Positions 5,233 to 60,462 of a stretch of DNA of 64,000 nucleotides are shown piece after piece. The stretch is taken from NCBI GenBank assembly GCA_002269645.1, contig NIVC01001334.1:247910-311909 (forward strand). Reading direction: 5' to 3'. The translations under genes were made by a program, and so were the position numbers. Source of the DNA: Macrostomum lignano. Lineage: Eukaryota. The notes beneath the pieces are model-generated. The model did no database searches, was not told the DNA's origin, and saw nothing but the letters and a program-made list of their open reading frames with translations. The number at the start of each line of letters is the position of its first letter. The first letter of the stretch is position 1.

Positions 5233-5240
5233 TCTGTGAG

Positions 5241-6441: not shown

Positions 6442-6712
6442 GCATGATCTGGGTTCATGACTTGAGATCTAGACTTCATGATCTGGAATCTAGACTTCAT
6501 GATCTGGAATCTAGACTTCATGATCTGGAATCTAGACTTCATGATCTGGAATCTAGACTTCATGATCTGGAATCTAGACTTCATGATCTGGAATCTAGAC
6601 TTCATGATCTGGAATCTAGACTTCATGATCTGGAATCTAGACTTCATGATCTGGAATCTAGACTTCATGATCTGGAATCTAGACTTCATGATCTGGAATC
6701 TAGAGTTCAGGA
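6442..6712. repeat. 21-bp minisatellite (CATGATCTGGAATCTAGACTT)
   Basis: ~12 near-perfect copies. Confidence 0.95.
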
Positions 6713-24119: not shown

Positions 24120-24129
24120 TTTTTAAAAA

Positions 24130-31345: not shown

Positions 31346-31449
31346 GCGGGTCGGCTGTCACCTTTGATTTGCGGCAGAGCCCAGAGCCCCCCTCCCACTG
31401 CTACAAAATAACAATAACCGTACTAGTAACTGGCATGGCGGATCGTCTC

Positions 31450-32490: not shown

Positions 32491-32550
32491 CGCAATGAAG
32501 CTTTATCTTTGGCAATTAAAATCCCCCGAATATAACTTGTCGCTCCTCAG

Positions 32551-36244: not shown

Positions 36245-37522
36245 TCGGGGTCTGGGTTGGTGGGTCAGGTAAAGAGTCAGGGTTTGAGTTGGTGGGTCAG
36301 GTAAAGAGTCAAGGTTTGAGTTGGTGGGTCAAGTAAAGATTCAGGGTTTGAGTTGGTGGGTCAGGTTAGGAGTCAGGGTGTAATTTGGTGGGTCAGGTAA
36401 GGAGTCAGGGTCTGACAGGGTCTGAGTTGGTCGTTCAGGTAAGGAGTCAGGGTCTGAGTGGGGGTCAGGTAAGGAGGCAGGGTCTGAGTGGGTGGGTCAG
36501 GTAAGAAGTCAGGGTCTGAGTGGGCGGGTCTAATTCAATGTCAGGGTCTGAGTGGGCGGGTTAATTCAATGTCAGGGTCTGAGTGGGCGGTCTAATTCAG
36601 GGTCAGGGTCTGAGTGGGCGGTCTAATTCAATGTCAGGGTCTGAGTGGGCGGGTCTAATTCAGGGTCAGGGTCTGAGTGGGCGGGTCTAATTCAGGGTCA
36701 GGGTCTGAGTGGGCGGGTCTAATTCAATGGGGTCAGGGTCTGAGTGGGCGGGTCAGGTAAGGAGGCAGGGTCTGAGTGGGCGGGTCAGGTGGGCAGGTCT
36801 AATTCAGGGTCAGGGTCTGAGTGGGCGGGTCTAATTCAGGGTCAGGGTCTGAGTGGGCGGGTCTAATTCAGGGTCAGGGTCTGAGTGGGCGGGTCTAATT
36901 CAGGGTCAGGGTCTGAGTGGGCGGGTCTAATTCAGGGTCAGGGTCTGAGTGGGCGGGTCTAATTCAAGGGTCAGGGTCTGAGTGGGCGGGTCTAATTCAG
37001 GGTCAGGGTCTGAGTGGGCGGGTCTAATTCAAGGGTCAGGGTCTGAGTGGGCGGGTCTAATTCAGGGTCAGGGTCTGAGTGGGCGGGTCTAATTCAATGT
37101 CAGGGTCTGAGTGGGCGGGTCTAATTCAATGTCAGGGTCTGAGTGGGCGGGTCTAATTCAGGGTCAGGGTCTGAGTGGGCGGGTCAGGTAAGGAGGCAGG
37201 GTCTGAGTGGGCGGGTCAGGTGGGCAGGTCTAATTCAGGGTCAGGGTCTGAGTGGGCGGGTCTAATTCAGGGTCAGGGTCTGAGTGGGCGGGTCTAATTC
37301 AGGGTCAGGGTCTGAGTGGGCGGGTCTAATTCAGGGTCAGGGTCTGAGTGGGCGGGTCTAATTCAGGGTCAGGGTCTGAGTGGGCGGGTCTAATTCAGGG
37401 TCAGGGTCTGAGTGGGCGGGTCTAATTCAAGGGTCTGAGTGGGCGGGTCTGAGTGGGCGGGTCTAATTCAGGGTCAGGGTCTGAGTGGGCGGGTCTAATT
37501 CAGTCAGTCAGGGGGTCTAATT
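36245..37522. repeat. 32-bp G-rich minisatellite (AGGGTCAGGGTCTGAGTGGGCGGGTCTAATTC)
   Basis: ~30 homogeneous copies plus a degenerate 5' part. Confidence 0.95.
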
Positions 37523-38330: not shown

Positions 38331-38379
38331 AACAGAGATTGCCCCCGTGACCCGACCCCCTCCCCCCACGCCCAGCAGC

Positions 38380-40620
38380 ATGCACTCGAGCTTCCCTCAC
38401 TGGCTCAACAAGTCGACTGGCAACGGGTCAGCAACCGAGGCCGCGTTGCTGCGCCTTCGCTACTCCGCGCCCGAGGCCGCTGTGATCGGCCTCAGCGTCC
38501 TGGTCATCTGGGTGCTGGTGGTGCTCGGCAACCTGCTGGTCATTGTTGCCATCGCCCGCGACCGAAAGGTGGCCACGCTGCAGAACTGGTTCCTGGCCTC
38601 CTTGGCCTTCGCCGACCTGCTGCTGGGCCTGCTGGTGATGCCGTTTTCCCTCACCAACCAGCTGCTTGGCGCCTGGGTGTTCGGCGCCAAGTGGTGCGAG
38701 CTCTGGCTGGCTATCGACGTTCTGATGTGCACCGCCAGCATCATGAACCTGTGCCTCATCAGCCTGGACCGCTACTGGAGCATGTCCCGGGCCCTGGTCT
38801 ATCATAGGCAGCGGACCCGGTCCCGGGCGGCTCTCATGATTGCCGTGGTGTGGTTTCTGTCAGCCGGGGTCTGCCTGCCGCCTCTGCTCGGCTGGCGGAA
38901 GCCGCAGGTCAGCGAAGTGCGCTGCGAACTCACCGACGAGATTGGCTACGTTGTCTACTCCAGCATGGGCAGCTTCTACATCCCCATGCTCATCATGGTG
39001 GTGGTGTACGCGAAGATCTTCCAGAGAGCTCGGCAGCGGGTGCGGCGTCGGCAGCTGATTCACTCGGTGAACATGGCGGCGCTGAGGAATTCCGCGGATC
39101 AGCTACGGGTGAGTTGAGTCTGGCCTCTGAATCGTCTAAAAATCTAACATGTGGTGCCACAATTGCCTCAATCATTAACAAATGTGTATTTAGTGGCTAT
39201 CGAACCATTGACATTGGGTTCGTTGGTGGGTGATGCCTCATGAACATTGGGTTAGTGGTGGGTGATGCCTCATGAACATTGGGTTGGTTGGTGGGTGATG
39301 ACTCATGAACATTGGGTTGGTTGGTGGGTGATGTCTCATGAACATTGGGTTGGTTGGGATGACTCATGAAAATTGGGTTGGTTGGTGGGAGATGACTCAT
39401 GAACTTTGGGTTGGTGGGTGGGTGATGCCTCATGAACATTGGGTTGGTTGTTGGTGATGTCTCATGAACATTCGAGTGGTTTGTGGGTGATGACTCATGA
39501 ACATTGGCTTGGTTGGTGGGTGATGTCTTATGAACATTGGGTTGGTTCGTGGGTGATGACTCATGAACATTGGGTTGGTTGGTGGGTGATGACTCATGAA
39601 CATTGGGTTGGTTGGTGGGTGATGTCTTATGAACATTCGAGTAGTTTGTGGGTGATGACTCATGAACATTGGGTTGGTTGGTGGGTGATGTCTTATGAAC
39701 ATTGGGTTGGTGGGTGGGTGATGACTCATGAACATTGGGTTGGTTGGTGGGTGATGTCTTATGAACATTGGGTTGGTGGGTGGGTGATGACTCATGAACA
39801 TTGGGTTGGTTGGTGGGTGATGCCTCATGAACATTGGGTTGGTTGGTGGGTGATGTCTTATGAACATTGGGTTGGTGGGTGGGTGATGACTCATGAACAT
39901 TGGGTTGGTTGGTGGGTGATGCCTCATGAACATTGGGTTGGTTGGTGGGTGATGTCTTATGAACATTCGAGTGGTTTGTGGGTGATGTCTCATGAACATT
40001 GGGTTGGTTCGTGGGTGATGACTCATGAACTTTGGGTTTGTTGATGGCTTATAGTTCAGAGTATTTAATTACGAGCGGTCCGGTCTCAAATCTACACCTT
40101 GCTCAACACAAAACCAACTGCCCATCAGACCCGAACATCGTCCAAACCGTCTTCAAGCAAGTCGGTATCGCCCGGAGACACGGATCGAGCAGATGAAAAA
40201 TCGGACTGCGCGGTCACCGAGCGACGAAATCAATCCGAGGAGGAGGAGGAGGACGCCGATGAGGGCATCGTCCCGGTCGACTCTGAGGCGGACGGCGGCG
40301 GTGGCGGCGGCAACAGCACAGTGGTCGAGCCGCTGACTGAGCTCAGCGAGGCTCTGCAGCGGAAGAGGCGACTAGCGAAGGCCAAGGAGCGCCGGGCAAC
40401 CCTCGTCCTCGGCCTCATCATGGGCGCCTTCGTGCTCTGCTGGTTTCCCTTCTTCACCACCTACCTGCTGCACATCCTCTGCCGCTGCGTGTCTCACCTT
40501 GTCTTCGACTTTTTCTTCTGGCTTGGCTACTGCAACAGCGCCATCAACCCGGTGATTTACACCGTGTTCAATAAGGACTTTAGGCAGGCGTTCAGACGAA
40601 TTCTCACCTGCAGAGCCTGA
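38380..40620 (+). CDS. ADRA2: Alpha-2-adrenergic-like biogenic amine GPCR, 2 exons, ~406 aa
   Basis: Exons 38380-39108 and 40129-40620 (phase 0). GN in TM1, LAFAD in TM2, TM3 Asp (AIDVLMCTASI), DRY, TM5 SSMGSF, KERRATLVL..CWFPFF, FFWLGYCNSAINPVIY, DFRQAFRRIL..C. Confidence 0.9.
39200..40040. repeat. 33-bp minisatellite in the GPCR intron (CATGAACATTGGGTTGGTTGGTGGGTGATGACT)
   Basis: ~25 copies; explains the 11-aa-period ORFs. Confidence 0.95.
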
Positions 40621-41947: not shown

Positions 41948-43897
41948 ATGAACGGGGCTCGGGCAGACGGCAGGCTGTCTTATGACCAGCTGCTAATCAA
42001 TGCCACAGTAGGTTTCGTTGCCGCTCTAGCCGTATCCGTTTTGGCTTTGTTCTCCGTCGACTGGAACTGCGGTCTGTGCTTCGCAGGGCTTGGTAAGTTC
42101 CACAGCTGCAGCATGCATGGCGTTTCATAACCCTCGATGCTCTCTTGATCCCTTGGTGCTGGCGCCCAACAATGACGTTCCTTACATGTACAATGGCACC
42201 CCGAAGAAGCACCCTACTATTGCGCCTTAAAATTGATGCTCCCCCGAGATGGCGCCTCTGGCACTGGTGCCTCAAAGTCGACGTTCTTCGACTTGAAATC
42301 AAATTTAGAAATCAAGCCCGTTGGTCAATCGATTCGCGTGATTCACGTTTCTTTTCTGTGTTAATTTTAAAGATTTTACACCTGATTGCTCTTCCAGTCT
42401 TGGCATCGGTTCTGCTAGCCGCCGGCGCCGCTGCCTGCCAGTACATTCGACGCAAGGAGCCGTCCGATTCGCTCAGCTGGCGCGGCTTCATCACCAGCGT
42501 GCTGCTGAGGCTTTTCGTCGAAACGATCGCCCGCTACTCGCTGAGCGCCAACCGCAAAGCGTACAAGTCGTGCAGTTCGATCCGAGCGGCGCAGGAGAAA
42601 ACGCTGATGCGAATTGTGCGCCAGAGCCGGGACACGCTGTTCGGCCGCGATCACCGATTCGCTGAGATTCACAGCATCGAGGACTATCGAGCCCTCGTGC
42701 CCGTGAGAGACTACGCCCAGCTCGATAAGTACAACCAATTGGCCTACAGAGGTGAACCCGATGTTTTCTTCAAGGGACGCGCCGATTACCTGGCCAAGAC
42801 AAGCGGAACCACGGGAAAGAACAAGACTTTTCCCATGGCAAAACGGTACCGGATGCAGCAGATATGGGGCTTCTTCGCCAATATGTCCTGCAGCGAGGTC
42901 TTTCTTGCCAAAGTCGGCCGGCGAGAAACAATGGCTCCTCAGCTGTACCTGGCAGTGCTGTCAGGCGACAGGCAAAATGAATTCGGAATTGACATTGGCC
43001 CGCTTTCAAAGTACTTCTTTTCTAACGGTGAGACAAAAATTTCAGCTTGTGCACAGTTCTTAGCAATAATTGAAGCACCGAATGCAGTAGTTCGATGCTG
43101 GTAACGTTTTGGTTCAGAGGCCCAGGTAACATTATTTTCAAACTGTTTCGTCATGTTTAGCATCACAAAAATTCACTTCAGGAGAAATCTACGCCACACC
43201 GGATGAGGTTTTCACAAGAATTCACGACTCGGATGCGTGCTTCTATCTGCACGCGGTGTTCGCCCTGTCCTTGGAGCGGATTGGATCCGCTTTAGCATTC
43301 TTCCCGACAAACCTGATCTCTTTCATGCGCTGCCTGAACTCCAACTGGGACTCGGTGCTGTCTGACATTGAGAACGGCAAGCTTCTCTGGAGAAAACGAC
43401 AGAGAAGAGTCTCCAGGCGGGTGCAATGCTCAGCATTGGGCAACTCGGGTGCACCATGGTCGACTTCACGGCAACCGACTGCTTTCTGTACGAGCCGCTT
43501 GTTAACACGTCGCGCGGGAGCAAGTACTATGTGCTCTTTGTAGAGCTGGACGGAGATAAATGTTTGAACGATGAGGAAAAGCTGCTGGTACGTTAGGTCA
43601 GATAGTTTGTACCAAGATGAGTTCTAAAAATTAAATCGCTATTATACCCATAGTGCACAACTTATGAAATTTTAGTTTGATAAGTCGCTGATGGACAGCT
43701 GCGAAAACTACAAACTGTTTCGAACCGAAGGGCACATCGATTCGATGCATGTCGTACAAGTTGGTCGCGGTGCATTCGCAGACCTCAGACGCACTATGAT
43801 GGAGCTAAATAAGGACATCAGTGAGACTCAGTTCAAGATGCCGAGGGTTTTGAAGACGGGCGAGCATGTGAAGTGCCTGCTGAAGCATCGTCTGTAA
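41948..43897 (+). pseudogene. GHDC: GH3/GHDC-like paralog A with a large frameshifting internal deletion
   Basis: Exons 41948-42092, 42398-43028, ~43181-43588 and 43676-43897. KTSGTTGKNK and QFKMPR are present. At ~43385, IENGKL is fused out of frame to LEKTTEKSLQ, so ~184 codons present in paralog B are missing. Confidence 0.8.
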
Positions 43898-44360
43898 CAG
43901 CTGGTTTCGTACCGTTCAAAAGATTTTTGATGCAGGAAGCTAAACCTTTAGCAAAGACTTTCGTAGAAGTGTTATTTCATACGCTTTCCCTATGCCCTTA
44001 GCTCGTATTCTTACGAAACTAAAGATTGATTTACACGTTAATTATATCAACTACGAGCAAATAGCTTTATATTTAAATTGATCTTTTCAATAAAACAAAG
44101 AATTCTGCTTAGTCTGTTAATTTTTAACCTGTTTATCTTCTCTATTTTATTCTCCATTAATTTGTTTGCCCAGCATTCAGCAAAAAAAGTTCAATCGAAT
44201 CAAACTATGTACTTTTACATCAATTTTTCTACTCTATGGCACAGCTCCGAGTATTAAGGATTCCAGGGAGAGTCTACAGCAAAAAGTTCTGTGGCTAATT
44301 AAGACAATAATCTCTGCATTTGCGGCAAGATCAGGCTGCGACCATTCGTAGCGAAGCAGC

Positions 44361-46308
44361 ATGTCACCCTCATGCACGGCCGCATTGATGGAGAACCGTT
44401 TCAGCCTCGATCCGGAGACAAAAAATCTGAGATTGAAGCGATTCCCCATTCCGGAGTCCCAAGGCTATGACCCCATGGGGATTCTGGACGCCAATTATCA
44501 CGGCAGTGCCGAGCTGCTGATGAGGCAGCGCTGCAAGAGCTGGTTCCGCATGGACATGTTCGTTCTGGACCGCTTGTTGGAGGCGCCTCTGATTCCATTC
44601 TGTCTGCACTTGTTTTGCGACATCTGGTCCTTTCACCGCAGTCTCGAAGGAGATCCAGCACCCATTGTTGATGTCATCAAGCTGGTCCGGCTGGCCAGAA
44701 CGATATCGGAAAAGTACAGCAGCATCAACTACTACCACACCGCCATCCATGGCATGGACGTGGCGCAGTCGATGAGCTGCCTGCTGCGCGTCGCTCTGAA
44801 GCTGGGGGTCCTGACTTTGGAAAGGCAGGAGCTCTTCATCGCGGTGCTGTCAGCCCTGATGCACGACATCAACCATCCGGGTGTCACGTACGACTACTTC
44901 TACGACAAGGTGATTAAGAACTTCTTCAAGTCGAAAAACATGGTCAGCAACGAGAACCCACTGACAAACGAACCGCTTCGTACGTCCATTCACCAGCGGT
45001 TTAGCAGAAGCTCGTCAAAAAGTAAGAGGCAGTACAGGTCTGTGTGAAAACTTTAGTTTGCAGGGGGCTGTAGGCATCCTGGCGCAACGAATTTGACTTC
45101 TATAGTGCTATAGGAAGACACCAAAAGACGAATAGTTACAGACATATCTGTCTAAGTAAAAAATATTACCTATGTGTCGTTCCTGCAGGGCGCTACCTGC
45201 ACTCTCTGGAGTCGCACCAAGCCAACATGTCGGTCTCGGCGCTGCTCTGCAGCAGTCTGATTTCTCACCTGCCCGAGCAACGTCAGCGACAGCTCTGCGA
45301 GTTGATGTCCAGCTTGGTGGAGAGCACCGACATGAGCCTGCATCAGTCGCTCAGCACCGAGGTTTCTCGGCTGGCGACTCTGTTTGACAGCGGCTCTCCG
45401 CCCGAGATCGAATCCCAGGAGCGCCTCATCCTACTCTGCTTCATTCTCAAATGCAGCGACATCAGCAACCCGGCCAAGGAGTGGGATTATTATTTCACCT
45501 GGGCTAAACTCATCACCGCAGAATTTTTCGCCCAAGGCGACAAGGAGCGCTTCATCCGCGGCTGCCTCAATCCGAACAAGTTTGTGACGCATTTCTGCGA
45601 CAGAACCCTGGTGAACTTTGAGCATTCGCAGGTCGGGTTCATCAAGTTTATTCGAGTGAGTTCCGAAAGAAGGTCAATATTTTAGCTTGAGCTTGAAACT
45701 GGCAGGAAGACATTAATAAACTTGATCAGACTTTACATGATCAGAGTCTTGCGGGTCCCATTTGCTAGTTTAAAGCTCCTAGATTTGGACAATTTGAATT
45801 TTTTAGCTTGTAAAGTTTTTTTGTTGCACTACTACGAGTAACAACTTTGAAAGTGAGGGATATTTTTAGTTCTTGATGACTATGTCAAGTTTTCAGTTGG
45901 GGGAATTTCTTGTAGTATAAACTTTAAGACCGTTGTTCATCTCTGTAGCAGGTTTCGGTGGTCCAGCATTGACCCAAGCTTTCCGCGCCTCGCATGCAGG
46001 AATCCTTCCAGTTCCTGGACAGCATCATGCACTGCGGCCTGACCCGGCGCATCCTGCTTCGCTTGGACAGAAACCAGCAGATGATGATGAAGATTCGCGA
46101 CTTGAAGAAGTTCAGCACCGGTGTCGACGTGAAGTCTCCGCCAAGGAAGCTGGTGGTGACGCTGATGCTGAAGGGCCCGGCAGACCCGCAGCCGGCGACA
46201 CAGAAGCTGAAGTGCTGCCTGCTGCTGGGCAGCCGCGACCGCAGCAGCTGCATGCGCCGGTCCAAGCAGTCCATTGTGGTCTGCGACAAGATGCAGATCA
46301 TGTATTGA
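44361..46308 (+). CDS. Class I cyclic-nucleotide phosphodiesterase, catalytic domain only, 3 exons, ~464 aa
   Basis: Exons 44361-44979, 45189-45655 and ~46000-46308. YHTAIHG, HDINHPG, LESHQ, STDMSLH, LKCSDISNP and invariant Gln in SQVGFI. Confidence 0.85.
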
Positions 46309-47847
46309 GCCCAGCGATGCTTCTTCCTGCATTGAATTTGCTGCACAAGTTTTGTGTACACGTGTTTAGTTGGCACGATTTATTTGGCAGTATTACATGA
46401 AAATGACAAAAGTGATACTGCATTATTTTCAGAGCTATAGAGAAGCTACTAGCTATGGTCGCATTGAAATTTCAGAGTGCATCAACGGCTTTCAACTTAT
46501 TTGCTTATCTTGATAGACTCAGAGACGAATGCTGAAGACTAATGTGGTATTTCGATAATAATGAAAGTAGTACCTAAAAGGTAGAACAGGTAGGTATTCA
46601 TATGTGATTGCAGAATGACCCTGAAACCCAATTTCTGTGCACTTGTATTTTTGTTCCCTATTTTAAAGGATCCAACTGAAACATGCGAAGGTGTTAGTAC
46701 ATGCATCATCAAGTAACTTCTGCTTCGCCATCTTAAAATAAGAAAGATAGTGCCAACAATTAAACTTCCGTGAATTAATGGCTGGTGAAGAGCTGGTTTT
46801 AAGATTTCAATGAATCTTAGGAATACATGTGTATGCTTAAATCCTTTATTCCCACATGGCTTAGCCGTTTGAAATCTGCCGCAATGACCAACCAGTTAGT
46901 AACCAAGTATGTACACTGTTGTACGGGGCTTCGACCGGATTCGTCTATGGCTAAACCCCATGTGGAAGATGCTTGCTGTCTGGGCTATACGAGGTATGGT
47001 TAGCCTAAGAGTGTTGAAACGGGGTGAAGCGCACGGCAGCTCGCCCGCTGCAATTGTCTATGGCTAACTTCAATAAATAAAAAGACTCGTATGCATATAA
47101 GTATTTAGCTAATGTTATACATGTACCTCTTCGCAAGGGGGCTAAGCGCCCCCTTGACCACGCTGTCTTCTGACTGCCATAGACATTTTCAGCGGGCCGT
47201 GAAACCGACTGAATACAATGGAGTAAATGTGATTTTACCATAGACAGTTTCTCGCCCGCTAACTTTTAACACTAATATTGGTTGGTATATTGCTTTCTAT
47301 CTGGGGGATGCTTGCTATTTGCGGGGTGCTTGGGGATATTTTTTATTTAGGGAGAGTACCAGTTATTTTTGTGAAGGCTTTATTTCGTTGTCTTTTTGTT
47401 ACTTTTAGAGCTTCATAGCAAATATCTTTGTCAGTGACAATTTTACTGGAATAAGGTGCTTTATTAAACTTAAGAAGGAGTTGGTTCTCAAGAAAATGTG
47501 CTTTTTAATGGATTTGCATGAATAACTTTTGCTCCTTGCTTATTGGACGCACCGAAGGGGGCACTATAGATTGCTAGTCCATATACTAAAAATGGTTTGT
47601 CGGTATCTATCTATCTTTTTTGCTAAACCCGTTTAGAAAACACAACTGTATTTTTTAGCTTTGCCACTCTCTAAAACATTTTTCTCGAAAAAAAACTTGT
47701 GAATGCACTTTAGACGAAACGCTTAGGCTCGAAGTTCAGTGCTAAAAAAACTGAAAACTTGCCATCAAATTTCGGAGCGAAAACCGCAGTCTGTAGCAAA
47801 TTTGCAATTTGAGTTTTATATGGGTGAGAAATGATTAGTTTTAGCCC

Positions 47848-49049
47848 TCAGGACAGTCGGAAGGTTTTTGACTTCCTGTGGGCGAACTGTCCATACAGCG
47901 AGCCGGGCTCGTCGCGGGCCCCGTCAGTCGAACAGCCCTGCAGCCACAGCCCGGGCTGCCAGCCGGGGGCCGCCGCCATGGACGCCCGCGTGAGCTCGCG
48001 GCTCAGCGACCCCCGCTCGGAGCGCCGCAGACCGGCTGCCCCAAGCGGACGGCCGGCCACCGCGCCAAGGCTGGTCCGCGACCTCTGCAGCGACGCCTGC
48101 TGATGCTGCTGCCGATGATGCTGTGGATGCTGCAGCCAGTTCTGATGCTGAGTCTGCCAGACTCCAACAGCCTCGTCGCTGTCGGCAGCTGGCAGCGCGG
48201 GCACTCGGCCCGGAGACTGGAAGACGTACTGCTTGAACTGGGAGTTGGGCTGCTTGCGGAAGGTTGCCCAGTCGGCTGCTTGCTGGCGGAAGTCCTGCGT
48301 TTGGTAAAACTGCGTTGTAATCGGAAATTTTGCCGCGTCTATTTTCAGGCACCACTATGAATATTACAAGGACTACTTAAAAAGTAGGAAGCAGTGCTGG
48401 TCGATACGACTTGTATGTAGCTACAAAATTACCCCATTCTAGAGCTTTAAGTCCAAATGAAATCCTAATAATTTTTTTCCATTTATCCCCTGGGATGTAT
48501 CGACGTTTCTAGTTAACTGGCCCGACAAGTCCCCGATCGCAGTGCGCTTGGTTCGGAGCTTGGCTTGGCATTGTCCCGCCCAGTGGCGACAATTTCAACC
48601 GTGTCGCACATTACCTGACCGTTCTCCTGCTCCAGGCTGAGGTGGCTCACGATGCTCTGCACCTCTTCCAGCTGCTTCGCCGTCTCCCGCTGTCGCCGAA
48701 TCAGGTCGCGAGTCTCGCCGAAATCGACCAGCTGGCAGAGGCTCGCCGCGGCAGTCGAGCCGGTGGCCAGCAACGCCAGCGAAGGCGGCGGCTCCAGCTG
48801 AGGCGGCGGTGCAGCGGGCGGCTGTCCCGGCGGGGCGGCCATGCGGCTCCAGCGCACCCGGGTCGTCGCCATCTTCGACTGACGCGGCGTTCGTCGGCTG
48901 GTCGGCGCGCGAAGCTCGTCAACGCTGGCGGCTGCAGCAGCAGTGGAAGAAGACTCGCAGGTGCCGTTGTAGTCGTCGTGGTCCCCGGCAGCCGCCGGCC
49001 CCAACTGGACGTCAAGCGAGCGCCGGCTTGGAATGGAGGCCGAGGTCAT
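47848..49049 (-). CDS. Hypothetical low-complexity protein with a short coiled coil, 2 exons, ~298 aa
   Basis: 49049-48615 (ATG...ENGQ|gtaatg) joins in frame to 48309-47848 (cgcag|FYQTQDF...KTFRLS*). GC-rich and codon-like; no family recognised. Confidence 0.5.
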
Positions 49050-49924
49050 GGCACGGGCGGGAAATACAGCAAATTTGAATGAAGTTTACAGAAGCCAAAT
49101 GAGGCCGGGCCTTATCAGTGCCTGCTGCTATCGGCTGGAAAGAAGAACTCTCGTTTCAGTGTCTTTCTGCCGAAATGGTGCCTGCCGAGCCAAGCTCTAC
49201 CTGTAGGCTCGGGGCCCAATTAATCAATTGGCTGAAGGCAGAGACTGAAAGGGAGGCAGAGAAATTCAAAGCAATTGCGAGCAAAGCAATTTCGCGTGAA
49301 AGCAGCAGCGTGTCTTCTGCGTTAACTCTGCCCGCTGCTTCGAGTCCGTTGGCTCTCTCTCTCTCCCGCCCCGGCAAAATTGTCTCCATGCTCAGCTTTT
49401 CTTCAACCCAATCTCTCTAGCAGCCTCACCGTGTCTCAAAATGCAGCCTCCTCAACTGAATTGAAACTGACAATTGCGACAGTCTGTGCGCGTCTCACAG
49501 TGCTCAAACAGCTCACCTGCCCCGCTGCTCCAAGCCGATAACTGTTTGGATAGAAACAAGTTGCCGAACTAAAATTAGGATAGCTAAATAGTGTCTGGAA
49601 ACATGATAAAAATATGTTTTTTTGCTGTTTCACCTCAAGGACTTCTAATTAAAACACCTAAGAAAAACAAACACTCGCTGTTAATGTGCGCTCATAACTT
49701 GCTGCCTAATCAATCTTATCTGGTCTCGGATAACAAACATATTGAGGAATTCGATTGGCAAAATTACCTGCTTTTGTCGCTTTTTTGCATCAGATGTGTG
49801 ATTTGATGTTGCTCATCTGATACTGGTTACTGATGCTTACAAGTGTATAGCCAGGGTGGGAGCAAGGGGGTCCGTGCCCCCACCCTCTAATCGGCTGGCA
49901 AAAGAATATGGCGCCCCTGACGCT

Positions 49925-50492
49925 GGCGCCATTTCAACTGAAATGGCACTCGCTCAAGTGAAATGGTGCTCACGCAAGTGAAATGGCGCTCACTCAAGTG
50001 AACTCGCGCTCACTCAAGTTAAATGGTGCTCACGCAAGTGAAATGGCGCTCACTCAAGTGAACTCGCGCTCACTCAAGTTAAATGGTGCTCACGCAAGTG
50101 AAATGGCGCTCACTCAATTGATCAAGTTAAACGGCGCTTGCTCAAGTGAAATTTCGCTCACTCAAGTAAATGGCGCTTACTCAAGTGAAATGGTGCTCGC
50201 TTAAGTGAAATAATGCTCACTTAAGTGAAATGGCGCTCGCTCAAGTGAAATGGTGCTCACTCAAGTTAAACGGCGCTTGTTCAAGTGAAATGGCGCTCAC
50301 TCAAGTGAACTCGCGCTCACTCAAGTTAAATGGTGCTCACGCAAGTGAAATGGCGCTCACTCAAGTGAAATGGCGCTCACTCAAGTTAAACGGCGCTTGG
50401 TCAAGTAAAATGGTGCTCACTCAAGTGAACTCGCTCTCACTCAAGTTAAATGGTGCTCACGCAAGTGAAAAGGCGCTCACTCGAGTGAAATG
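49925..50492. repeat. ~20-bp minisatellite (CACTCAAGTGAAATGGCGCT) with a 60-bp higher-order unit
   Basis: Exact 60-bp repeat at 49971-50090; 20-aa period in the ORF track. Confidence 0.9.
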
Positions 50493-50699
50493 GAGCCTAT
50501 CCATTACTTTGTAAAATGATCATGAGAAACGCATATAAGTTCTATCTTATAAATATTTATTAGGAGCAAATTTCTTTTTATTCTTCCAAATGCTGATCTG
50601 CATTCCTACTGTCATAAAATAATCATTAAATCACGTGACTAATGTACATAGAAATGAAATTCGATGCAAAAGTCGTCTGATCGCTATCGCCCTATCGCA

Positions 50700-51290
50700 A
50701 CCCCAAGTTAAAAGAAACCAAGGCTTAACCTTTGAGGTGGGCCCAGCCCCCGCAAGAAGGCATCGGCGACCCTCATCCGGCCGGTCTCTCGGACGAAGGC
50801 GCGAAGGTCACGGATGTTGTCCGGGGTAGTCAGCTCGGTCCATCCACTGCACTGGGGGTGGCCGAGGTGTTTGTTTGTGCCGCGCCTTATTGAAGTAACG
50901 GCAGAAGGTGACGTGATGCTCCAGTCTAATGTCATAGAAAAGACAGGTGGGAGGGCAGCCGGTTTGCAGCGAGATACGTCTCTGGGAGAATCCCTGACCG
51001 GTTCGGATCATGCAAATCTACCTGAGGTCGGTTCTGTTAAGTGGGATCAGATAATCAGAGACTTTTCTGTTCAGGTCAGACATTAAAGAGCGAGTCTGCC
51101 TGTAGGCGGTGCAGCTGTTCCAGTGGAGCTGGCGTTGCTGGTGGAGCCACCTGTTGATGTGGCGGCTGATTTGCGACCTTGGCATGGGTAGCTTCACCAG
51201 ACGGTGGCTGTGGGAATCCGTGAAGTCTGTGAAGTCATTGGCGCACCATGCAGTGCCGTAAAACATCGGAAGAAGCGGTTATTTAAATTT
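50700..51290 (-). mobile_element. Degenerate 3' end of a non-LTR retrotransposon ORF2 (C-terminal CCHC-type region)
   Basis: Joined frames read [62 protein letters not shown], resembling the post-RNaseH tail of I/Loa/R1-group LINEs; contains a stop and a frameshift. Confidence 0.6.
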
Positions 51291-51511
51291 TATCCCAGGC
51301 TATTGTAACTGGTTGAAGCAGAAAGTTGCAGAAAAAATGATGTATGAAATGAGCGCGTTTTCTCGCATCCAGTTTGTTTATACATGTATTTAGTGTGAAT
51401 TTCAGAGTTGTAAAAACATTTTTGTATTGTTTTATCAACGTGAGTTATATAAATTTGATAATGAAGTGCTTGAATAAAAAATAATTGTTAAACTCCGCTA
51501 AGACCAGGAAG

Positions 51512-54455
51512 TCACAGCCGCTGTTCCAGCAGGCACTCAACGTGCTCGGCCAGCCTCAGAACTCGGGGCATTTTGAATTGCGCCTCGCTGATGTCCGGGT
51601 TCAGCTCCATCATTCTGCGTCGGAGTGTACCAAAAGCTCCCGGTTGCACTTGCACGACCGTCATGGTGTCGATGTCGCCTTCCGATCTGAACAGATTGTA
51701 GTCCTCCAGCGAGTCGCGCAGCGCCTTGTCGAACTGAAATGTGTTAAGAATATTAGGCTCCCGATTCTACTGCCTACTGTACCAACTGAAGCAAACATAA
51801 ATGCAAGTTCTTGTTTACATGGTTTCCTTGATCGGCGACCTGAAGTGTCAGTCAATTCTATTCTGATAATTTTATTTCACCTGCCGTATGGCAGATGTGC
51901 AACCGACAACTCAGCCGCAGCTATTGTGTTGTAAGGCTCGTACATCTGAAGGCTCGTACGTCTGTTCAGTCCAAGGACTGGGGGGTCGCCGCACACACCC
52001 TCAATTACCCCAGCTAATGCGGCACCCATTTTACAACTGGATGAACTGAAGCAATGCAGAGTTAAGTGTCTTGCTCAAGGACACAAAAAACACCTTTCAG
52101 TCGTTAGTCCGACGCTCTAACCACTCGGCTACAACTCCCTGAATAAACAAACTGAATCTAAACAAAGTAAACCATCCAGGCTCCAAAAAAGACTCACCAC
52201 CAACAGCTCATCCTCTACCAACACTCTGGAGCTGTCCAGCTCAACAAAAATGATGTAAAACTTGGTTTCTTTTGACGTTCCGGTGATCGACTCGTACAGA
52301 AAGCAGTCGGTGGCCGAGAAGTCCACGATCTCGCATCCCAGCCTGCGGGCAGCGAGAGCTACGCAGTTCTGAAGGCTCTTCTCGGTTGTTTTTTCGACAT
52401 GCACGGCCAGAACGTGGGACTTTCTGAAAGTTTCAATTACAAGCGTGCGATCTCTGTTACGAGGTAAAAGCAGTTTGTCAAGGAACACACGTTGGCCATA
52501 ATAGTGTATAATATATGCTTGCGTTGACGTTCATCAGTATCCAGGTAGCCCAATTCAATGTTAGTAAAGAAATTTCTTGTAGTTCCTGATATGCTACCAA
52601 ATTGCCAGAAGTTTCTAACGAAAAGCAGAGCTCTATAAAATACCTGTGCGATATCTCGAAGACCGGCGCGCATCCGTCCATCTTAGTCACCTTGATTACG
52701 TCACCGACACGAAGCCGGAAGCAGTTAAACGAGGTGGAGACAGTCTCGTAGAGCTGGCCAACCTTCAGCTCGTGCGCCAGCAGCGGCTCCCCCAAGTCAT
52801 TGCCGTCAGCGTCGATTGGAATGAACTCGACGAAGGAGCCGGACAAGAAAGGATGGTAAGTTTCCGGTCGGTCGTCCGTTTCTAAGTTTAGGTTTATTCC
52901 GAACAGGCCTTCTGTGCTTATTATGAAAGGACAGAAGGTCGGAACATTTCCGAGGTACTTTTTGAGAAAACGGTAGGGCGACTCAAACGAGCCAGACCGA
53001 GCGAGCATTACAAACGGGACGTCGGGCCAGGCCTTTTCAAAGAAACCGCTCAAGTCCTTTCCATCGCCGAACAGGGATCTGAGTTGGGCCGCTCGCTCCG
53101 GCTTCGGACTAAGATACTGGTTTAAAAGACTGAGCAACTCTTTGTCCACATCCTTCAGCTTTTCAGCACTGAGCTTGCCGTTCTCAATGTCAGACAGCAC
53201 CGAGTCCCAGTTGGAGCTCACGCAGCGCACGAGAGAGATCAGGTTGGTGGGGAAGAACACGTTCACTTCGCCAATCTGCTCGTGCCACAGGGCGAACACG
53301 GAGTGAACGTAAAATCCCGTGTCAGCGTCGTGAATCTTCTTAAACGCTTCAACTGGCGTCGTGTAAATGTCGACTAAAAAGCATTAAAAAGTGTTTACAC
53401 TCATTAGTTAATAGCGAGCTATAAAAAGTGTATCAGCCCCAACCTGCTGCTGAAAATTGGTATCCCAGCGCTACTCACCAGGAGTGTGAAAATATTTAGT
53501 CAGTGGTGCGATCGGAACACCGAACTCGTTCTGCCTATCTTTGGGTAGATTTCTGACCACAAAAAGCCGTTTAAGCTTATATTGCCTGCCATGGCGGCTG
53601 GCCAGCAGCTCCCTGGTGTAATACACCAGCATGAAGATGGACATCAGCGAACGCTCAGCGATGGGCCGAATCACCGAGAACGTCTTGTTCTTGCCCGTAG
53701 TGCCGCTAGTCTTGAACAGGCAGTCCGGCCGGCCTTTGAAGTAGACGTCCGGCTCGCCACGGTAGGCCAGCTGGTTGTACTTGTCCAGTTCGTTGTAGTT
53801 CCGCACAGGAACTCGGGCCCGAAAGTCTTCGATGCCGCGCACCTCCGCGAAGCCGTGGTCTTGCCCGAAAATCGTCTCGCGACTCTGCTCGACCAACTGC
53901 ATCAGGGTTTGCTGCTGCTTAGCCCGCATCGCGCTGCCGGATTTGTACGCTCTTTTCAGATCCCACACCGAGTACCTGGCCCAGGTGACGCCTAGCAGTT
54001 TCAAAAGTGACAGCATCAAAAAGCCGCGCCAGCCGAGGGTGTTGCAGGGCTGCTGCAGCCGTAGGTATTGGCTCACGACGGCCGCAGTGACTGACAGAGT
54101 GGCCAACACCCCTACAGAAAGAGATGTCACTTTTGAGACTTGAATGAACAGCCTGGAAATGTGCTTAGCTGTATCTCATAAAAAGTTGGGAGCTCGTTAA
54201 AGAGCTCCCAACATGGCCACTGTGAGAAGTGGCAATACGACTGTTTGGTTTCTAGGATGGCCACATTCCCACATTCAGGATTACACGTATATTTATAATC
54301 CCCCCATGATTTTTGTCAACATGTTCAAATCGCTTACCGAACGCGGCGAAGGTGAGGGGGCCGCCGGAGAGTTGCAGCATCGCAAAAGCGAGGCCGGACA
54401 GCAGCAGGGCAGCCGCTGCCGTTGCCAAATTCAGCAGCTCTTCGTACGTTCGCAT
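51512..54455 (-). CDS. GHDC: GH3/GHDC-like acyl-amido-synthetase-like protein, paralog B, intact, 5 exons, ~642 aa, hydrophobic N-terminus
   Basis: Exons 54455-54338, 54111-53479, 53373-52644, 52423-52198 and 51733-51512, phase-consistent (1929 nt). VPVRNY, KTSGTTGKNK, STEG, VEFIP, RLRVGDV and QFKMPR motifs. Confidence 0.9.
51994..52131 (+). mobile_element. L2/MIR-like 3' tail (SINE/LINE remnant) in the last intron of GH3 paralog B
   Basis: AGTTAAGTGTCTTGCTCAAGGACAC...AGTCCGACGCTCTAACCACT; a second copy lies at ~21085. Confidence 0.65.
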
Positions 54456-54570
54456 GTAACTGGCCAACCTTGGTTATTGAAAGGCGAGCAAAGCAAGAAT
54501 ATCGCCAGCCAGCCAAATAAACAGGCAGCCGAAAACCTTGTAGAACCCTCGCAAATACAATCGACATATA

Positions 54571-54622
<52 letters not shown>
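54571..54622. repeat. (GA)n microsatellite upstream of GH3 paralog B
   Basis: Direct inspection. Confidence 0.97.
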
Positions 54623-54625
<3 letters not shown>

Positions 54626-55199
54626 TGCGGCGGCCTACTCATTTTATGGTCTATCTTTGCTAGCCGTGAGACTTATTGATACAGAAAGCCTTTTGTTGAG
54701 TATTGCGAGTATGAGTATACACTGGCAGCAGCCGGTTTGATCTTGTGTGCACGAGGCGGCAGAATAGGCAGGGTGCTCGGGCTTGAAGCGTGACTTTTTG
54801 CGCGACAGTAATTATACAATTGCAGCCTTACAATAGAAAGTATTTCCCTCAGTACGCAAAATGCGCAAAAGACCGAACGGATTACGAGCGTACAAAGAAT
54901 CCCTTGGAGCTTTTATTAATCAGCTCAATTTACTACTTAATGATGCAGTTTAGCAGTATTTTCAAAAGTGAATATATTTGGAAAGTGTCACACGCTAGCA
55001 GCGCCACTGATCAATTTAAAAAGGGATCCGAGCCAACTGTGCACTGATTTGTGCATTCTTTGATCCGCTAAGCGGTAATTTAAACCGGCTTTTACAAATA
55101 TGAATAAGCCAATAGCAAAAATTCAAGTATTGGGCTACCGAAATTGGTTCAGCGACACATTGTAGGTACACAACGATTCACAATTCCTAAATATAGCGC

Positions 55200-55736
55200 T
55201 CACAGGCACCCGTCCAACAGGCACCGCAGGCTGTCTTCGCTCCTGAGAACTCTCGGCATTTTGAACTGAAACTCGCTGATGCCATCATTCCGCCTCATCA
55301 TCTGCAGGCGCAGCGCAGCGAACGCCCCCAGTTTCACCTGCAGCACTTGCATCGTGTCGATGCGGCCGCCGACTCTCATCTGGTCGTAGTGTTCGGAGCT
55401 CTCGCGAAGGGTCTGGTCAAACTGTGTGAGAGAGAGGGGGAGAGCTGCATCCAGTCACTGTGGTGGGTCACGACTCACCGCGAAAGTCCCGCCCGCAAAG
55501 TCATCGTTACCAGCTGCTTGTCGTCTTCAGCGAGACGCCTGTCTCCGTCGAGCTCAACGAACAGCGCGTAGTACTTGGTCCCGCGGCAGGTTCCGGCCAC
55601 CGGCTCGTACAGAAAGCATTCAGCCGCCGAGAAGTCAATCACGTGACAGTTGAGTCTCTCAGCGGCCAGTAGGACGCAGGATTGAAGGGCGTTCTCGGTG
55701 GTCTTTTCAGCATCAACCGACAGCATGTGAGACTTC
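55200..55736 (-). CDS. GHDC: GH3/GHDC-like paralog C, last two exons only within the window
   Basis: Exons 55736-55511 (226 nt, KSHMLSVDAEKTTEN...) and 55421-55200 (222 nt, FDQTL...QFKMPRVL...*) have the same lengths and phases as paralog B exons 4 and 5. Confidence 0.85.
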
Positions 55737-56715
55737 CTGTACAGTTTTGATAAAAAATGTTGGCAACCAGCGTTAGTCAGCTATAATTAGCTTTGCAGAG
55801 GGGATTTTGGCGCTGCCACAAATAAAAGTTAAAATGAATAGGCAAGTGTGTAAGTCATGCCCTGCTCACCCATGAGCACGCACATGCATGCGGATCATGG
55901 ATGAAGGAATAGAAAGGATCCAAAGAGTTTTGAGGTCGCCTAGTATACCCTGTGGGGAATTTCAGTGCGCCCAACAGTTCGCCGACGGCGGCGCCCCACT
56001 GGGGGCGACTGTGCGCCAAAGCGTACTGCTGGGTCTACGCCGCGCCGGCGCCCCGAGGGGTCCGGGGCGCAAGGTAGATTTTTTTCTGAAAAAATATGCT
56101 ATTTACCTACTGTTAGTAGTATGTTAAGAGCATGCTGCAACAGAATCTTTTAAAGGAGGATTTTTTTCCAGCTTTGCGACCCTGCAGCTACTGGGCCAGT
56201 AGGCCTTGTATACTGCTAGGCATTGCACCAAATGCACTTTGTTTTTGTTGTAACTTCGTCCTGTTCTTGCTCGTTGTCATTTGAGACAATTTGAGACGCA
56301 CTAATTTGAAGAAAAAAATCGTATATATCAATTTATGCGTAATATATATATATAGAAATTTTCATTTCATTTTTACTTTAAGTAGCATATATTATATTGC
56401 AACTGTTTTCATAGATCTTGAGCGACAATATATTGACAATATACAAAATAAAATACTATATTATTATTTCTACACTTTGGAGTTACAATTATAACAATTT
56501 GCAAAAACAGTAAAACATTTACAGGAATTCGTAATCGAGTAACAGAAATATGAAATAACAGTAGAGTAATCCGAAGGGCAAAATACAGAATAGGTAAATG
56601 AAAATGAATAAACATGCAAGACAGCGAACATGGGACAAAGTTAAAATAATAATACACTGAGTCGAGTAATAATGGAGGAAAATCCAAAGACGGTTTTGAT
56701 TGATTGGTTCTTCGC

Positions 56716-59700
56716 CTAAGGCGCCTTAGTCAGACGATGTACATGTATCTGGCTCATCTTCGGAAGACGAGATTCGCGGATGACGGGCTGCGCCATCTGT
56801 CTTTCGCCTTTTGTGGCTTCTGCTTGTTGATGAAGCAGAGGCGGCAGCAGGTGGCAGCCGTGGCGTTGACGACTGTGTCGCCCTGACTGCAGAGGAAACT
56901 GCAGCAGCCTGCAGCCGCCGCCTTGGTGGCGGCAGAGGCGCAGCAGCAGCGGTGGTGGCGGCAACAGCATTCGGCGGCTGGGGGCGGGGTGCGCTGGAGC
57001 CGTTTTTCGCCGATGGGATCGCTTTGACGCTCGGTCGTTCCCGCGCTTAAGCATGTCAATTACCGCATTCTTCACATCATCAAATTTTGGCCGTCCGTGG
57101 TCTTCAGACAGGCCGTATATGACAGTGATGGCATCTGTGGAAATTAAAGTTTGGGGGAACCTCGAATTGTCTAATTTGTATAGGTCTACAGGACATAAAT
57201 GTATACTTCTACTTGATAATTCACCGTGAAGAAAGTACGAGTACAATGACCGGATGAGCGAATTAAAAGACATTCGCGATGACTAATGTCAGCTAATGTG
57301 TTTACGTATTATAAGTGGCATAGGCTGCAGCATTTTACTTAGCTTGTAAGTCTTTACGAGTAAGTCTTCGTTCCTAGGTACTTTGAAATAAAACTCTTTT
57401 TTATTCGTTTCTTTTAATCTCTTTTAATATAAATTTCTCCCTCTCTCTTTTTGTACATGATGACAGGGATGACGGGTATGAAGACAGGCGGAAATGAAGG
57501 AAGAGACAACACCATTCTTACCTTGAAATCTCGGACAAAAGACACTCTGAAATGCCATCTGGCTTTCCGTTAGGACCGTCTCTACTCCGGCGCCTCGGGC
57601 TCTGTCTGGCAAATGTTGGCCATTGTAATTTACAACTGCCTGAATTTGGTCAGAGAGGGTGCAATCCAGCATCGCCCTGAGTGTCTGCTGCCATGACTCC
57701 CGCCGACAGAGTCGCAGTAGAAGCCTCTGGAGTGAATAATTGCGAATAATACTTTGTGAAGGAGTAAAGAATTATATTGCGAATGAATCGGAATGATTGA
57801 TCAATCATAATACTTTAGGACTGTGAAAAAAGATAAAACATTAATTCCTTAATTCTATACTATTGTAAAGAGCGACTTGGAATTTATTGGTATGGGAAAC
57901 TAAGCTTATACTTATTGCTTTTCCCTGTACTGAATTGTATAATTCTTCACTTCTATTAACAAAATTGACAATGTATACTACTACAAGTACTTCATTCCAA
58001 GTTCATCCAAAACGATACTATCAAAGAAGACATAAATTGAAAACTTACCAGCGATGTCAAATGCTCTGCGGGCATCTCGACTACAAAGTCGACATATTGC
58101 TGCCAACTTGAAATGGGCCAGAAGTTGGTCTCCGGCGCAGCCTGTGGGTCCAATGCTGCAGTGAGCCGCATCACTTCTGCCCGCAAACCCGTCAATTCAT
58201 TAATTAAACGATTAATTAATGCCTCCTGGTGGACATGTCGCACCTCGGACTCGCGCAACACGGTCAGCAGAACGAACAGCAGGCCCTGACTGCTGTCAAT
58301 ACGATCAGGAATTGCCCGCTGAAATTGGTCTCGCAGTGATCGTATCGCATAGGGCCACTGACAGCGGTCTCCAGCTGACTCAATGAAAACTTCCGAGGTT
58401 GCAGCAGCGGAAGTGATGGCAGCGGAGGAGGTGATAGCAGCGGCGGAGGTGATGGCAGCGGTCGAGGTGATGACAGCGGCAGACGTGATGGTACCGGCCT
58501 TCGGCACAGTGGAATCATCCACTCGATGCAAGCGCCTCGGTCGAGGCGTTGGTGGCTGGAATGGTAGTGATCCTTTGTGTGATCAAACGAAAATTGGCCT
58601 TATTTGATGGCGGTGTGAATGAGCCTTTAATATGGCGCCCCTCAGATGAAAAAATAACAACATAACAAATAGACGTACTGGCTCATCCATTGCCATCGTC
58701 GCGTTATTCATCGTCGCGTCTTCGGGCTCCTCTTCGATGTCCTCTGGCTAAATAAGACGGGGTAAGTGAGTGGTGGTGTTGGATTGATTAGGTAAATTTA
58801 CCCTCTCCGATCATCTCGATTCTCTACCCTCTACATATGATCATTTGTCCACCCTTTATGACTCTCTCTACCTCTCTCTCCATGATATGATTGACCAAGA
58901 GGAGACTAAGAGGAGTGAAAATTAGTTAAGGAGTGACACCAGCTGAGTAAGTTAGAAAAGACTAATAAACTTACTGACTGATTCACCGACTGCGTCGCGT
59001 TCTCAGAGTGATTCCCAGGGACAGGGTGGTCAATGAGTCGCAGAGGTGGTGGCGCCGAATCCGCATCGTCCTCCCCCACTTCGTGGTCCTCTGGCTGAAT
59101 CAGACGGCAGACAGGGGTGATTAAGATTTGGATTAAATGCAGCTTGTTTCGAAAATGTGACGGAAGGACTGACTGACTGCAGGAGTGACATTTTAGTGAC
59201 AGAAGGAGTGACACAGGGTGAAGGAGTGTGTGTGGTTAAAAAATGAAAAACTTACTGGCTCATTCACCGTCTCAACCTCGTTGGGTGGCGACATTGGAAG
59301 CAATTGGGCGGCTGTGTGTGCCACGTCAGCTAATTTAAATGTAGCATTCCCTTCGGCTTCGCTCACAGCCTGAGCCTCAAAAAAGGCTTCGGTGTCTGAT
59401 GCGGAGCCTGTTTCAATATCCTGTGGAACGAAATGACGAATACTTGTTGCGAATAATGTGTGTTTGTCTTTTGTAGCGGATTTAAACATTTGCTCGCCCA
59501 ATACACAGTTATATACTATAGATTGTAGAGTCATATAGACTATAGGACATAAGTTAATGAGAACTGTACTCCGTACTGCCGAACACTATACTGAGAATAG
59601 AATCCCGAATGTTGGCCCGTTGAACGTTTACCTGCGTTTGATAAGTGCGTCTTGCTACTCTGGCGTCGGCTTCAGTGAAAACTCTTGGTTGCAGCTTTTC

Positions 59701-60179
59701 GAGGATCAGGCCGAGTCGTTGCTTTTTCGCCACGAGTTTCCGGATATAGCGGATGCTAATCGACTCGTCTGACAGAATAACCTTTCGGGGAAGTCGTGAA
59801 GGTGACGTAGTTATATAAATCAAATGTAAGTGTGAACTGTCAGTGCAGATTTTATTTAGTCCATTCTAATCCATTCTATTTTGTTTATCTTTCTTTATAG
59901 AAATGGCACGTCACATATCGGTGGACAGTCCCATTATAAAGACAAGGGTCATTAAAGGTCAAGCCAAAGAATCACATTTATAACATAACTTACTTGCAAA
60001 ATCACTGCCGTGTAGGAGCGCCCTTCGTAAGTCACGCTGCAGCTCCACATATCCGTGGACTGCCTGTGATTGAGCCATTCGACCTCCGTTAGCGAAGCTA
60101 AATGTGCAGGCAGCTGTATGCTTTCACTATCGACCTCAATTACTTGTCTATCTTCTCTAAAGATAATCACAAACTTCAT
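56716..60179 (-). CDS. Multi-exon DUF4806-like transposon accessory gene (~8 exons; boundaries approximate)
   Basis: N-terminal MKFVIIF..VIEV..W segment, acidic/low-complexity middle, coiled coil, then WPISS..., LRAMLDCTLSDQIQAVVNYNG and ..VKNAVIDMLKRGNDR, resembling DUF4806 proteins. Splice-like GT/AG sites bound each coding block. Confidence 0.6.
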
Positions 60180-60462
60180 GGTTCGGAATAATCAGATATC
60201 GGTTTAGCAGAGTGGCATGGGTTCAGCGCCACATGAAGGGCACAATTGAATTGTATATAAAATTCTTCATCGCCCACCCCCTTTCCATTGACTCCTCTGA
60301 GCCAATAGGATTCTTCGGAGAGAATTCTTTAGCAGAACCCCACACTCACCCGGGTCCTCCTATTAGAGGTGCCCGAATGAAACTCGACCTTCGATAAAAA
60401 TTAATTCTGTAAATTCAGTAAATTCAATAATTAATAATTAAAGTAAATTCATTCCATAAACA

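Follow-up and report, generated by a model that had tools for sequence, protein, structure and literature searches.

A 64-kb stretch of the Macrostomum lignano genome (contig NIVC01001334.1, positions 247,910 to 311,909; hereafter the window, whose base 64000 is the end of the contig) contains a cluster of sequences related to the GH3 family of acid-amine ligases. Searches by tblastn with the exons of one copy (B), and then with full-length M. lignano proteins, revealed three GH3-homologous exon sets (A, B, and C) in the window and none elsewhere in it. The matches extend over 42382-43894 on the plus strand (A) and over 54455-51515 (B) and 55741-55203 (C) on the minus strand; with B as the query, the intervals were 42385-43894, 54130-51515, and 55741-55212, respectively. 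Chance similarity is excluded, as the Pfam GH3 N-terminal domain matches with expectation values (E) of 1e-26 for A and 3e-22 for B, and the GH3_M and GH3_C domains match as well. Positions 41512-64000 match the end of NIVC01001334.1 in assembly GCA_002269645.1 (Mlig_3_7) at 100% identity. The sequence is eukaryotic in character, with short GT-AG introns and abundant tandem repeats. The first-pass annotation of this DNA had described three GH3 paralogs within 14 kb in both orientations. The homology, the three copies, and the placement on both strands hold, but the description as three genes does not, because A carries a deletion and a frameshift and C consists of its last two exons. The cluster is best read as a decayed tandem and inverted set of bilaterian GH3 (GHDC-like) genes, made up of a functional gene B, a pseudogene A, and a 3' stump of C, with C intact in sister copies of the locus. 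We assign this reading a probability of roughly 0.78.

Paralog B (51512-54455, minus strand; Mlig018690) was identified as a complete GH3-family gene from its spliced coding sequence, its Pfam domains, its alignment to plant GH3 proteins, and an AlphaFold2 model. Five exons (54455-54338, 54111-53479, 53373-52644, 52423-52198, and 51733-51512, stop codon included) are separated by four introns, all of the GT-AG type, and the translation is identical to PAA69309.1 (Mlig018690g1, 642 residues). The GH3 family is represented in Pfam by PF03321, PF23571, and PF23572, and membership was defined as matches to all three models above their gathering thresholds. All three domains (GH3, GH3_M, and GH3_C) were called on the 642-residue product and are also recorded for the B-containing UniProt protein A0A1I8GPV1; searched exon by exon, B scored 79.5 and 56.5 bits for GH3 and 46.6 bits for GH3_M (cut-off, 23.6 bits). 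The Mlig_3_7 gene set was built from RNA-seq transcripts (PMC5730564), so the gene models for B and C imply that both are transcribed.

Comparison with plant GH3 enzymes of solved structure by phmmer aligned residues 105-637 of B with OsGH3.8 (E, 5e-36) and with VvGH3.1, JAR1, GH3.5, GH3.6, and PBS3 (E around 1e-31 to 1e-28); across OsGH3.8, VvGH3.1, JAR1, and PBS3, E ran from 5e-36 to 8e-21. The solved structures 7dk8, 4b2g, 4epl, 5kod, and 4epm aligned to residues 104-637 of B with E of 5e-36 to 6e-28. The catalytic signatures looked for were a P-loop of the form (S/T)SGT(S/T)xGxxK, motif II (SSE or STE), motif III (YRxGD), and the lysine of a C-terminal QxKxPR, and B carries a counterpart of each: TSGTTGKNK, ISTEG, FRLRVGD, and QFKMPR. 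In the alignment, TSGTTGKNK falls on the plant P-loop, STEGLFGINL on plant SSECYFGLNL, FRLRVGDVIKV on plant YRYRVGDVLRV, and QFKMPRV on plant QYKVPRC. Residues invariant across 18 aligned animal sequences include T174, G176, and G179 of the P-loop as well as E405, R470, R472, D475, and K623. The AlphaFold2 model of B, generated from the alignment of these 18 sequences, reached a mean predicted local distance difference test score (pLDDT) of 89 and a predicted template modeling score of 0.85. Foldseek superposed it on AtGH3.15 (6avh) with a template modeling (TM) score of 0.84 to 0.86 and a root mean square deviation (rmsd) of about 3 Å (2.9 Å at a TM score of 0.86). Other GH3 crystal structures gave lower TM scores and an rmsd near 13 Å over an equal length, a pattern that rotation of the C-terminal domain would produce. 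Since B keeps every adenylation motif, an acid-amine conjugating activity can reasonably be inferred, and judged by its sequence B is a real GH3-family ligase gene, probably active and membrane-anchored.

The predicted anchor lies at the N terminus. With a threshold of a mean Kyte-Doolittle hydropathy of at least 1.6 over 19 residues, two segments of B (residues 6-31 and 33-54) were recovered, and two matching segments are present in A and in full-length C. The AlphaFold2 model of B shows helices at residues 4-28 and 33-58 with a pLDDT of 84 to 92. The coding sequence of this hydrophobic hairpin was assigned from hydropathy and the model to 54278-54446 on the minus strand, an interval that spans the junction of the first two exons and includes part of intron 1 (54337-54112); the coding sequence of helix 2 continues within the second exon to about 54058. 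At least one hydrophobic segment occurs in the first 70 residues of 14 of the 16 other animal homologs. The proposal that the two copies with visible 5' ends, A and B, begin with hydrophobic segments is thus confirmed, and the Pfam domains and hydropathy together support the broader one, that these are animal GH3-family (ANL-type) genes with a hydrophobic N-terminal anchor. A two-helix hairpin would place both ends of the protein on the same side of the membrane, and because the enzyme needs ATP, this is likely the cytosolic face.

Paralog A (41948-43897, plus strand) is a disrupted GH3 copy, as recognized from tblastn, from its alignment to B, and from the absence of a gene call. Its exons lie at 41948-42092, 42398-43027, 43182-43587, and 43676-43897; the first (with an ATG at 41948), the second, and the last are open and homologous to those of B, and the third holds a deletion joint. 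Only residues 34-318 and 503-642 of B are matched by A in tblastn. The joint was placed at 43376-43390 (plus strand) from the sequence, the reading frames, and the translations: homology in exon 3 ends after ...SDIENGKL at about 43384 and resumes at LEKTTEKS, which is eight codons into the following exon of B, with a shift from frame 2 upstream to frame 1 downstream. Missing from A are residues 319 to about 497 of B (about 180 codons) together with intron 3 of B, roughly 0.77 kb. The deletion removes motif II (STEG), motif III (RVGD), and the whole central domain (GH3_M), leaving the P-loop and the C-terminal lysine as the only catalytic signatures, and Pfam accordingly recognizes only the N-terminal part of GH3 and GH3_C. 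Read as it stands, with the two sides in different frames, A runs into a stop 52 codons past the joint. No gene model is present at A in the GenBank annotation, a gene set built from RNA-seq transcripts (PMC5730564), and conceptual A used as the query found no A-like protein among 5.8 billion proteins, the closest being B at 54% identity. The loss of about 180 codons, the frameshift, and the lack of both a gene model and a protein match indicate that A is a pseudogene. An origin as a processed pseudogene (retrocopy) was rejected, since three introns are kept at the parental positions; A is therefore a decayed duplicate. Its 466 remaining codons contain no stop, which suggests that the disabling event was fairly recent.

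If A were alive, its product would be a truncated protein of about 370 residues, consisting of the anchor and the N-terminal half of GH3 with the P-loop, that could act in a regulatory or dominant-negative manner. The retained exons are all open with intact splice sites, and A still has its ATG and the two hydrophobic segments. Such a protein would, however, have neither motif II nor motif III and none of the C-terminal domain, its last 52 residues would be read out of frame, and it is represented neither by a transcript-based gene model nor by a matching protein in any source. We therefore regard a functional truncated A as very unlikely.

An 86-nt tract of A (43298-43383, plus strand) is 93% identical to B (53172-53257, minus strand) and ends exactly at the deletion joint. 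About 45 nt of it are fully identical, third codon positions included. Elsewhere the identity between A and B is about 70 to 77%, and C differs across the tract. This pattern of nucleotide identity hints at gene conversion, or at an aberrant recombination event involving the inverted paralogs A and B, beside the deletion.

Paralog C is present in the window as a fragment (55200-55736, minus strand) corresponding to the last two exons of Mlig009145. The exons, 55736-55511 and 55421-55200, translate with zero differences to residues 495-643 of PAA87106.1 (Mlig009145g1, 643 residues), and Pfam reports GH3_C only, at 22.5 bits, just below the cut-off. The first 494 codons are not beside the fragment, as no match to the remainder of Mlig009145 lies between it and the contig end upstream. 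Two other contigs, NIVC01000248.1 and NIVC01001598.1, carry all five exons of C upstream of a copy of B in the same orientation, that is, an intact tandem pair. Their identity to the window across B and its flanks is 97.4% and 99%, respectively, as expected for duplicated blocks of the neopolyploid M. lignano genome. Homology with the intact contigs breaks at 55947-55948: the blastn alignments of NIVC01000248.1 (99.9%) and NIVC01001598.1 (99%) both start at 55947, which lies 211 bp upstream of the C fragment and within the third intron of C in the intact contigs. Beyond this point, window positions 55948-64000 show no similarity to the NIVC01000248.1 and NIVC01001598.1 loci or to the rest of the window. 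This sequence holds transposase-like open reading frames (ORFs) at 61005-62506 (plus strand); only the first of them (61005-61865) was searched, and 98% of its length aligns at 50% identity with the M. lignano "Transposase domain-containing protein" Mlig012501g5. Pfam gave no match on the ORFs of 55948-64000, including both transposase-like ones, and a search at the breakpoint for the terminal repeats or target-site signs of an inserted element was negative. The first 494 codons of C have thus either been lost from this copy or been separated from the rest by an insertion that exceeds 8 kb and extends past the contig end.

Several side observations concern C and its sister copies. Intron 3 of the intact copies contains an inverted repeat of about 156 bp (12522-12678 and 13116-13271 in NIVC01000248.1), and the break in the window falls inside one arm. 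About 1.8 kb between C and B in NIVC01000248.1 (14250-16028) is absent from NIVC01001598.1 and from the window (at 54944-54947), and a secretin-type G-protein-coupled receptor (GPCR; 7tm_2) lies upstream of C in NIVC01000248.1. The UniProt models of the locus are A0A1I8GPV1, A0A1I8JCN3, A0A1I8HMW9, and A0A1I8H1B1, comprising C/B fusions of 791 to 1272 residues and one truncated C. A0A1I8GPV1 (791 residues), which comes from a separate M. lignano gene set, begins at the penultimate exon of C and reads into B, and the entries of 1261 and 1272 residues fuse the whole of C to B. The truncated C model is named "Sulfotransfer_1 domain-containing protein," and its sequence is that of the N-terminal 415 residues of a GH3 protein. 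The fusions, which join neighboring genes, and the Sulfotransfer_1 name look like annotation errors.

Some points weigh against the reading of one functional gene, one pseudogene, and one stump. The deletion in A is known from one long-read contig. The truncation of C was also seen in one long-read contig, with its breakpoint 8 kb from the contig end and beside repeat-rich sequence, where there may be a large intronic insertion or a chimeric join. The stop-free codons of A mean either that the disruption is recent or that a truncated product is still in use. For B, the evidence for a membrane anchor consists of hydropathy and a predicted helix hairpin, and no enzymatic, localization, or expression-pattern data for B or C were found in the literature searched. 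The structural doubts could be taken further, to the view that the defects of A, C, or both are an assembly artifact or conceal hidden structure (a collapsed or chimeric contig end, or a transposon in the intron of C) and that two or three intact genes are really present. The position of breakpoint 55947 inside an arm of the intronic inverted repeat, the nearby contig end, the transposase-like ORF in the intervening sequence, and the known redundancy and repeat richness of the assembly (PMC5730564) would all fit this view. However, the A deletion joins two coding segments cleanly in unique sequence far from the contig end, A0A1I8GPV1 from the separate gene set also starts at the penultimate exon of C and so matches the truncated arrangement, and the terminal repeats of an inserted element were not found at the C breakpoint. 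An artifact is therefore considered unlikely, though it retains some weight, and decay of A and truncation of C are preferred.

The three copies are related to one another as paralogs. Their amino acid identity is 52 to 56%, which indicates old paralogs rather than assembly duplicates; the near-identical duplicates of the locus were located on other contigs (NIVC01000248.1 and NIVC01001598.1). The three introns retained in A and the one retained in C occupy the same alignment columns, in the same phases, as those of B, and all are GT-AG introns. On both points, the conserved intron positions and the view that haplotype or assembly duplication is unlikely, the first-pass annotation was borne out. 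Its further proposal was that all three membrane-anchored GH3 paralogs are functional and jointly form a local system for amide conjugation. The three homologous copies within 14 kb, the hydrophobic N termini, the catalytic plausibility of B as suggested by its motifs, and the intact tandem pair of B and C on other contigs speak for such a system. Against it, A is frameshifted and has lost its central domain along with motifs II and III, C in the window lacks its first 494 codons, and no A-like protein is annotated anywhere. With B alone intact within the window, a three-enzyme local system is not upheld, and we consider it highly improbable. The analogy drawn with the schistosome pheromone finds support here only in shared superfamily membership.

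Relatives of B were sought by an exhaustive HMMER search of 1.84 billion cluster representatives, which returned 3383 matches with E of 1e-3 or lower and 222 with E of 1e-30 or lower, the best about 30% identical. Among the 20 top-ranked matches looked up, the nearest relatives had E of 8e-69 to 2e-40 and 24 to 31% identity. Those that carry a name come from molluscs (Haliotis, Mactra, and Solemya), nemerteans (Lineus and Tubulanus), a brachiopod (Lingula), annelids (Owenia and Dimorphilus), echinoderms (Lytechinus and Diadema), a hemichordate (Ptychodera), and a tardigrade (Hypsibius). Automatic names of these relatives include "probable indole-3-acetic acid-amido synthetase GH3.9," "JAR4-like," "GH3 domain-containing protein-like," and "uncharacterized." Most of the invertebrate GH3-like proteins resemble B in length (630 to 650 residues), and in most of them one or two hydrophobic segments fall within the first 65 residues. 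At least two copies share a scaffold or chromosome in several species, and Lingula has at least five on one 294-kb scaffold. The "local expansion" seen in the first-pass annotation is thus not special to M. lignano. The Macrostomum locus differs from these in that two of the three copies in the window are degraded. A, B, and C are about 25 to 29% identical to the invertebrate GH3-like proteins, compared with 52 to 56% among themselves, so by these identities they look like the product of a duplication in the Macrostomum lineage. Sequence comparison indicates that the putatively anchored GH3 protein is a conserved bilaterian family. We read the locus as an ordinary member of this GH3/GHDC-like family, already in public annotation (GenBank and UniProt), with nothing new in kind.

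A foreign origin of the genes, by plant or bacterial contamination or by recent horizontal transfer, might be suspected because a word-indexed search with B returned, outside M. lignano, bacterial GH3 proteins only and because the automatic names of relatives copy those of plant GH3 proteins. The result of the word-indexed search is misleading, since the exhaustive HMMER search put animal relatives closest: every named protein among the 20 top-ranked matches looked up is from an animal. The GH3 genes have spliceosomal GT-AG introns and animal neighbors (a phosphodiesterase and a rhodopsin-type GPCR), and three contigs of this assembly carry them. Contamination and horizontal transfer were rejected on the introns, the animal neighbors, and the animal nearest relatives, and their probability is negligible.

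The biochemistry of plant GH3 enzymes is established: an acid is adenylated with ATP, and the acyl group is transferred to an amine to form an amide. The plant proteins AtGH3.15, AtGH3.5/3.6, JAR1/GH3.11, PBS3/GH3.12, OsGH3.8, and VvGH3.1 share with B the three-domain architecture, the motifs, and the fold, but their identity to B is only 20 to 24%, and B differs from the aligned plant chains by about 100 extra N-terminal residues that include the two hydrophobic helices. Nothing in the analysis links B to auxin or jasmonate. PaaK-type phenylacetate-coenzyme A (CoA) ligases, which belong to the ANL superfamily, are similar to the B model in their superfamily fold (Foldseek E of about 1e-9; TM score of about 0.6), so two-step adenylate chemistry is expected. 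They are only 10 to 13% identical to B, and their acceptor is the thiol of CoA instead of an amine; GH3 differs from them and from other ANL enzymes in having a central domain of its own. Vertebrate GHDC (LGP1 homolog), like B, is an animal GH3-domain protein without an assigned function. GHDC has been reported at the endoplasmic reticulum and the nuclear envelope. The hemichordate relative of B, named "GH3 domain-containing protein-like" by NCBI, is the sole pointer from the relatives to GHDC.

The catalytic activity, membrane topology, and reaction type proposed for B are modeled on plant GH3 enzymes through homology. The two-helix hairpin (residues about 4-58) would tether B, and intact C elsewhere, to a membrane, and the catalytic body would face the cytosol, where ATP is present. 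ATP would be bound by three elements of this GH3 body, the P-loop TSGTTGKNK, motif II (STEG), and motif III (RLRVGD), and would be used by B to adenylate a carboxylic acid. The C-terminal domain would then rotate, and the acyl group would be passed to an amine or amino acid to yield an amide, as in plant GH3 enzymes. The literature searched yielded no published assay or functional study of GHDC or of a GH3 protein from any animal, and a full-text search for the gene identifiers and through the supplements of M. lignano papers yielded no expression data for Mlig018690 or Mlig009145.

The remaining sequence of the window contains other genes and many repeats. Between A and B lies a cyclic-nucleotide phosphodiesterase gene (44361-46308, plus strand; Pfam PDEase_I, E of 1e-26) that is not part of the GH3 feature. 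Modeled with exons at 44361-45021, 45189-45655, and 46000-46308, it encodes 478 residues, the length of the gene called there in GenBank, and the sequence of its catalytic domain has diverged considerably near the HD motif (HDINHPG). A partial ORF of a rhodopsin-family GPCR (38347-39117, plus strand; 7tm_1, E of 4e-51) lies about 3 kb upstream of A; it shows aminergic-receptor-like motifs, and a 33-nt tandem repeat (39211-40047) comes after it. Downstream of B, positions 49934-50493 hold about 28 copies of a 20-nt tandem repeat with the consensus TCAAGTGAAATGGCGCTCAC; the array is also present in NIVC01000248.1 and NIVC01001598.1, where the alignments are multiple and offset by the repeat period. 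Within intron 4 of B (52080-52140, minus strand), a transfer RNA (tRNA)-like stretch, GTAGCCGAGTGGTTAGAGCGTCGGACT..., is followed by what by eye resembles the body of a short interspersed nuclear element; a tRNA at this position was rejected, as ARAGORN calls none anywhere in the window. The pol region of a long terminal repeat retrotransposon (14029-17756, plus strand) encodes an aspartyl protease, reverse transcriptase, RNase H, an integrase zinc finger, and an integrase core, divided among three overlapping or adjacent ORFs. Two ORFs on the minus strand (2042-2953 and 12384-13049), one with DUF5662 (E of 1e-17) and the other with a BTK motif (E of 1e-9), are probably exons of other genes. 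Long arrays of 16- to 46-nt tandem repeats at 4419-7660, 22637-24120, 31446-32497, and 34469-37503, some of which yield long artificial ORFs, explain why GC content and skew vary so much along the window.

GH3 enzymes are central to hormone control in plants, and no assigned function was found in the literature searched for their animal relatives, human GHDC included. The conservation of the catalytic motifs and of the hydrophobic N terminus from flatworms to echinoderms is an argument that animals really have a membrane-associated ligase activity. For annotation, the window should be corrected to one gene, one pseudogene, and one gene fragment in place of three enzymes, and the UniProt fusions should be recognized as joining neighbors. 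A wider and tentative possibility, to which we give well under even odds, is that bilaterian invertebrates use their anchored GH3 proteins, of which vertebrate GHDC may be the counterpart, as active acid-amine ligases, producing near membranes a hitherto unrecognized class of metabolites (N-acyl amino acids or acyl-amines). Were this so, such metabolites would serve as signals or xenobiotic conjugates, and the intact B/C pair of M. lignano, an animal open to RNA interference and transgenesis, would offer a practical route to the substrates. B and C of M. lignano could in this way help to de-orphanize the animal GH3/GHDC family.

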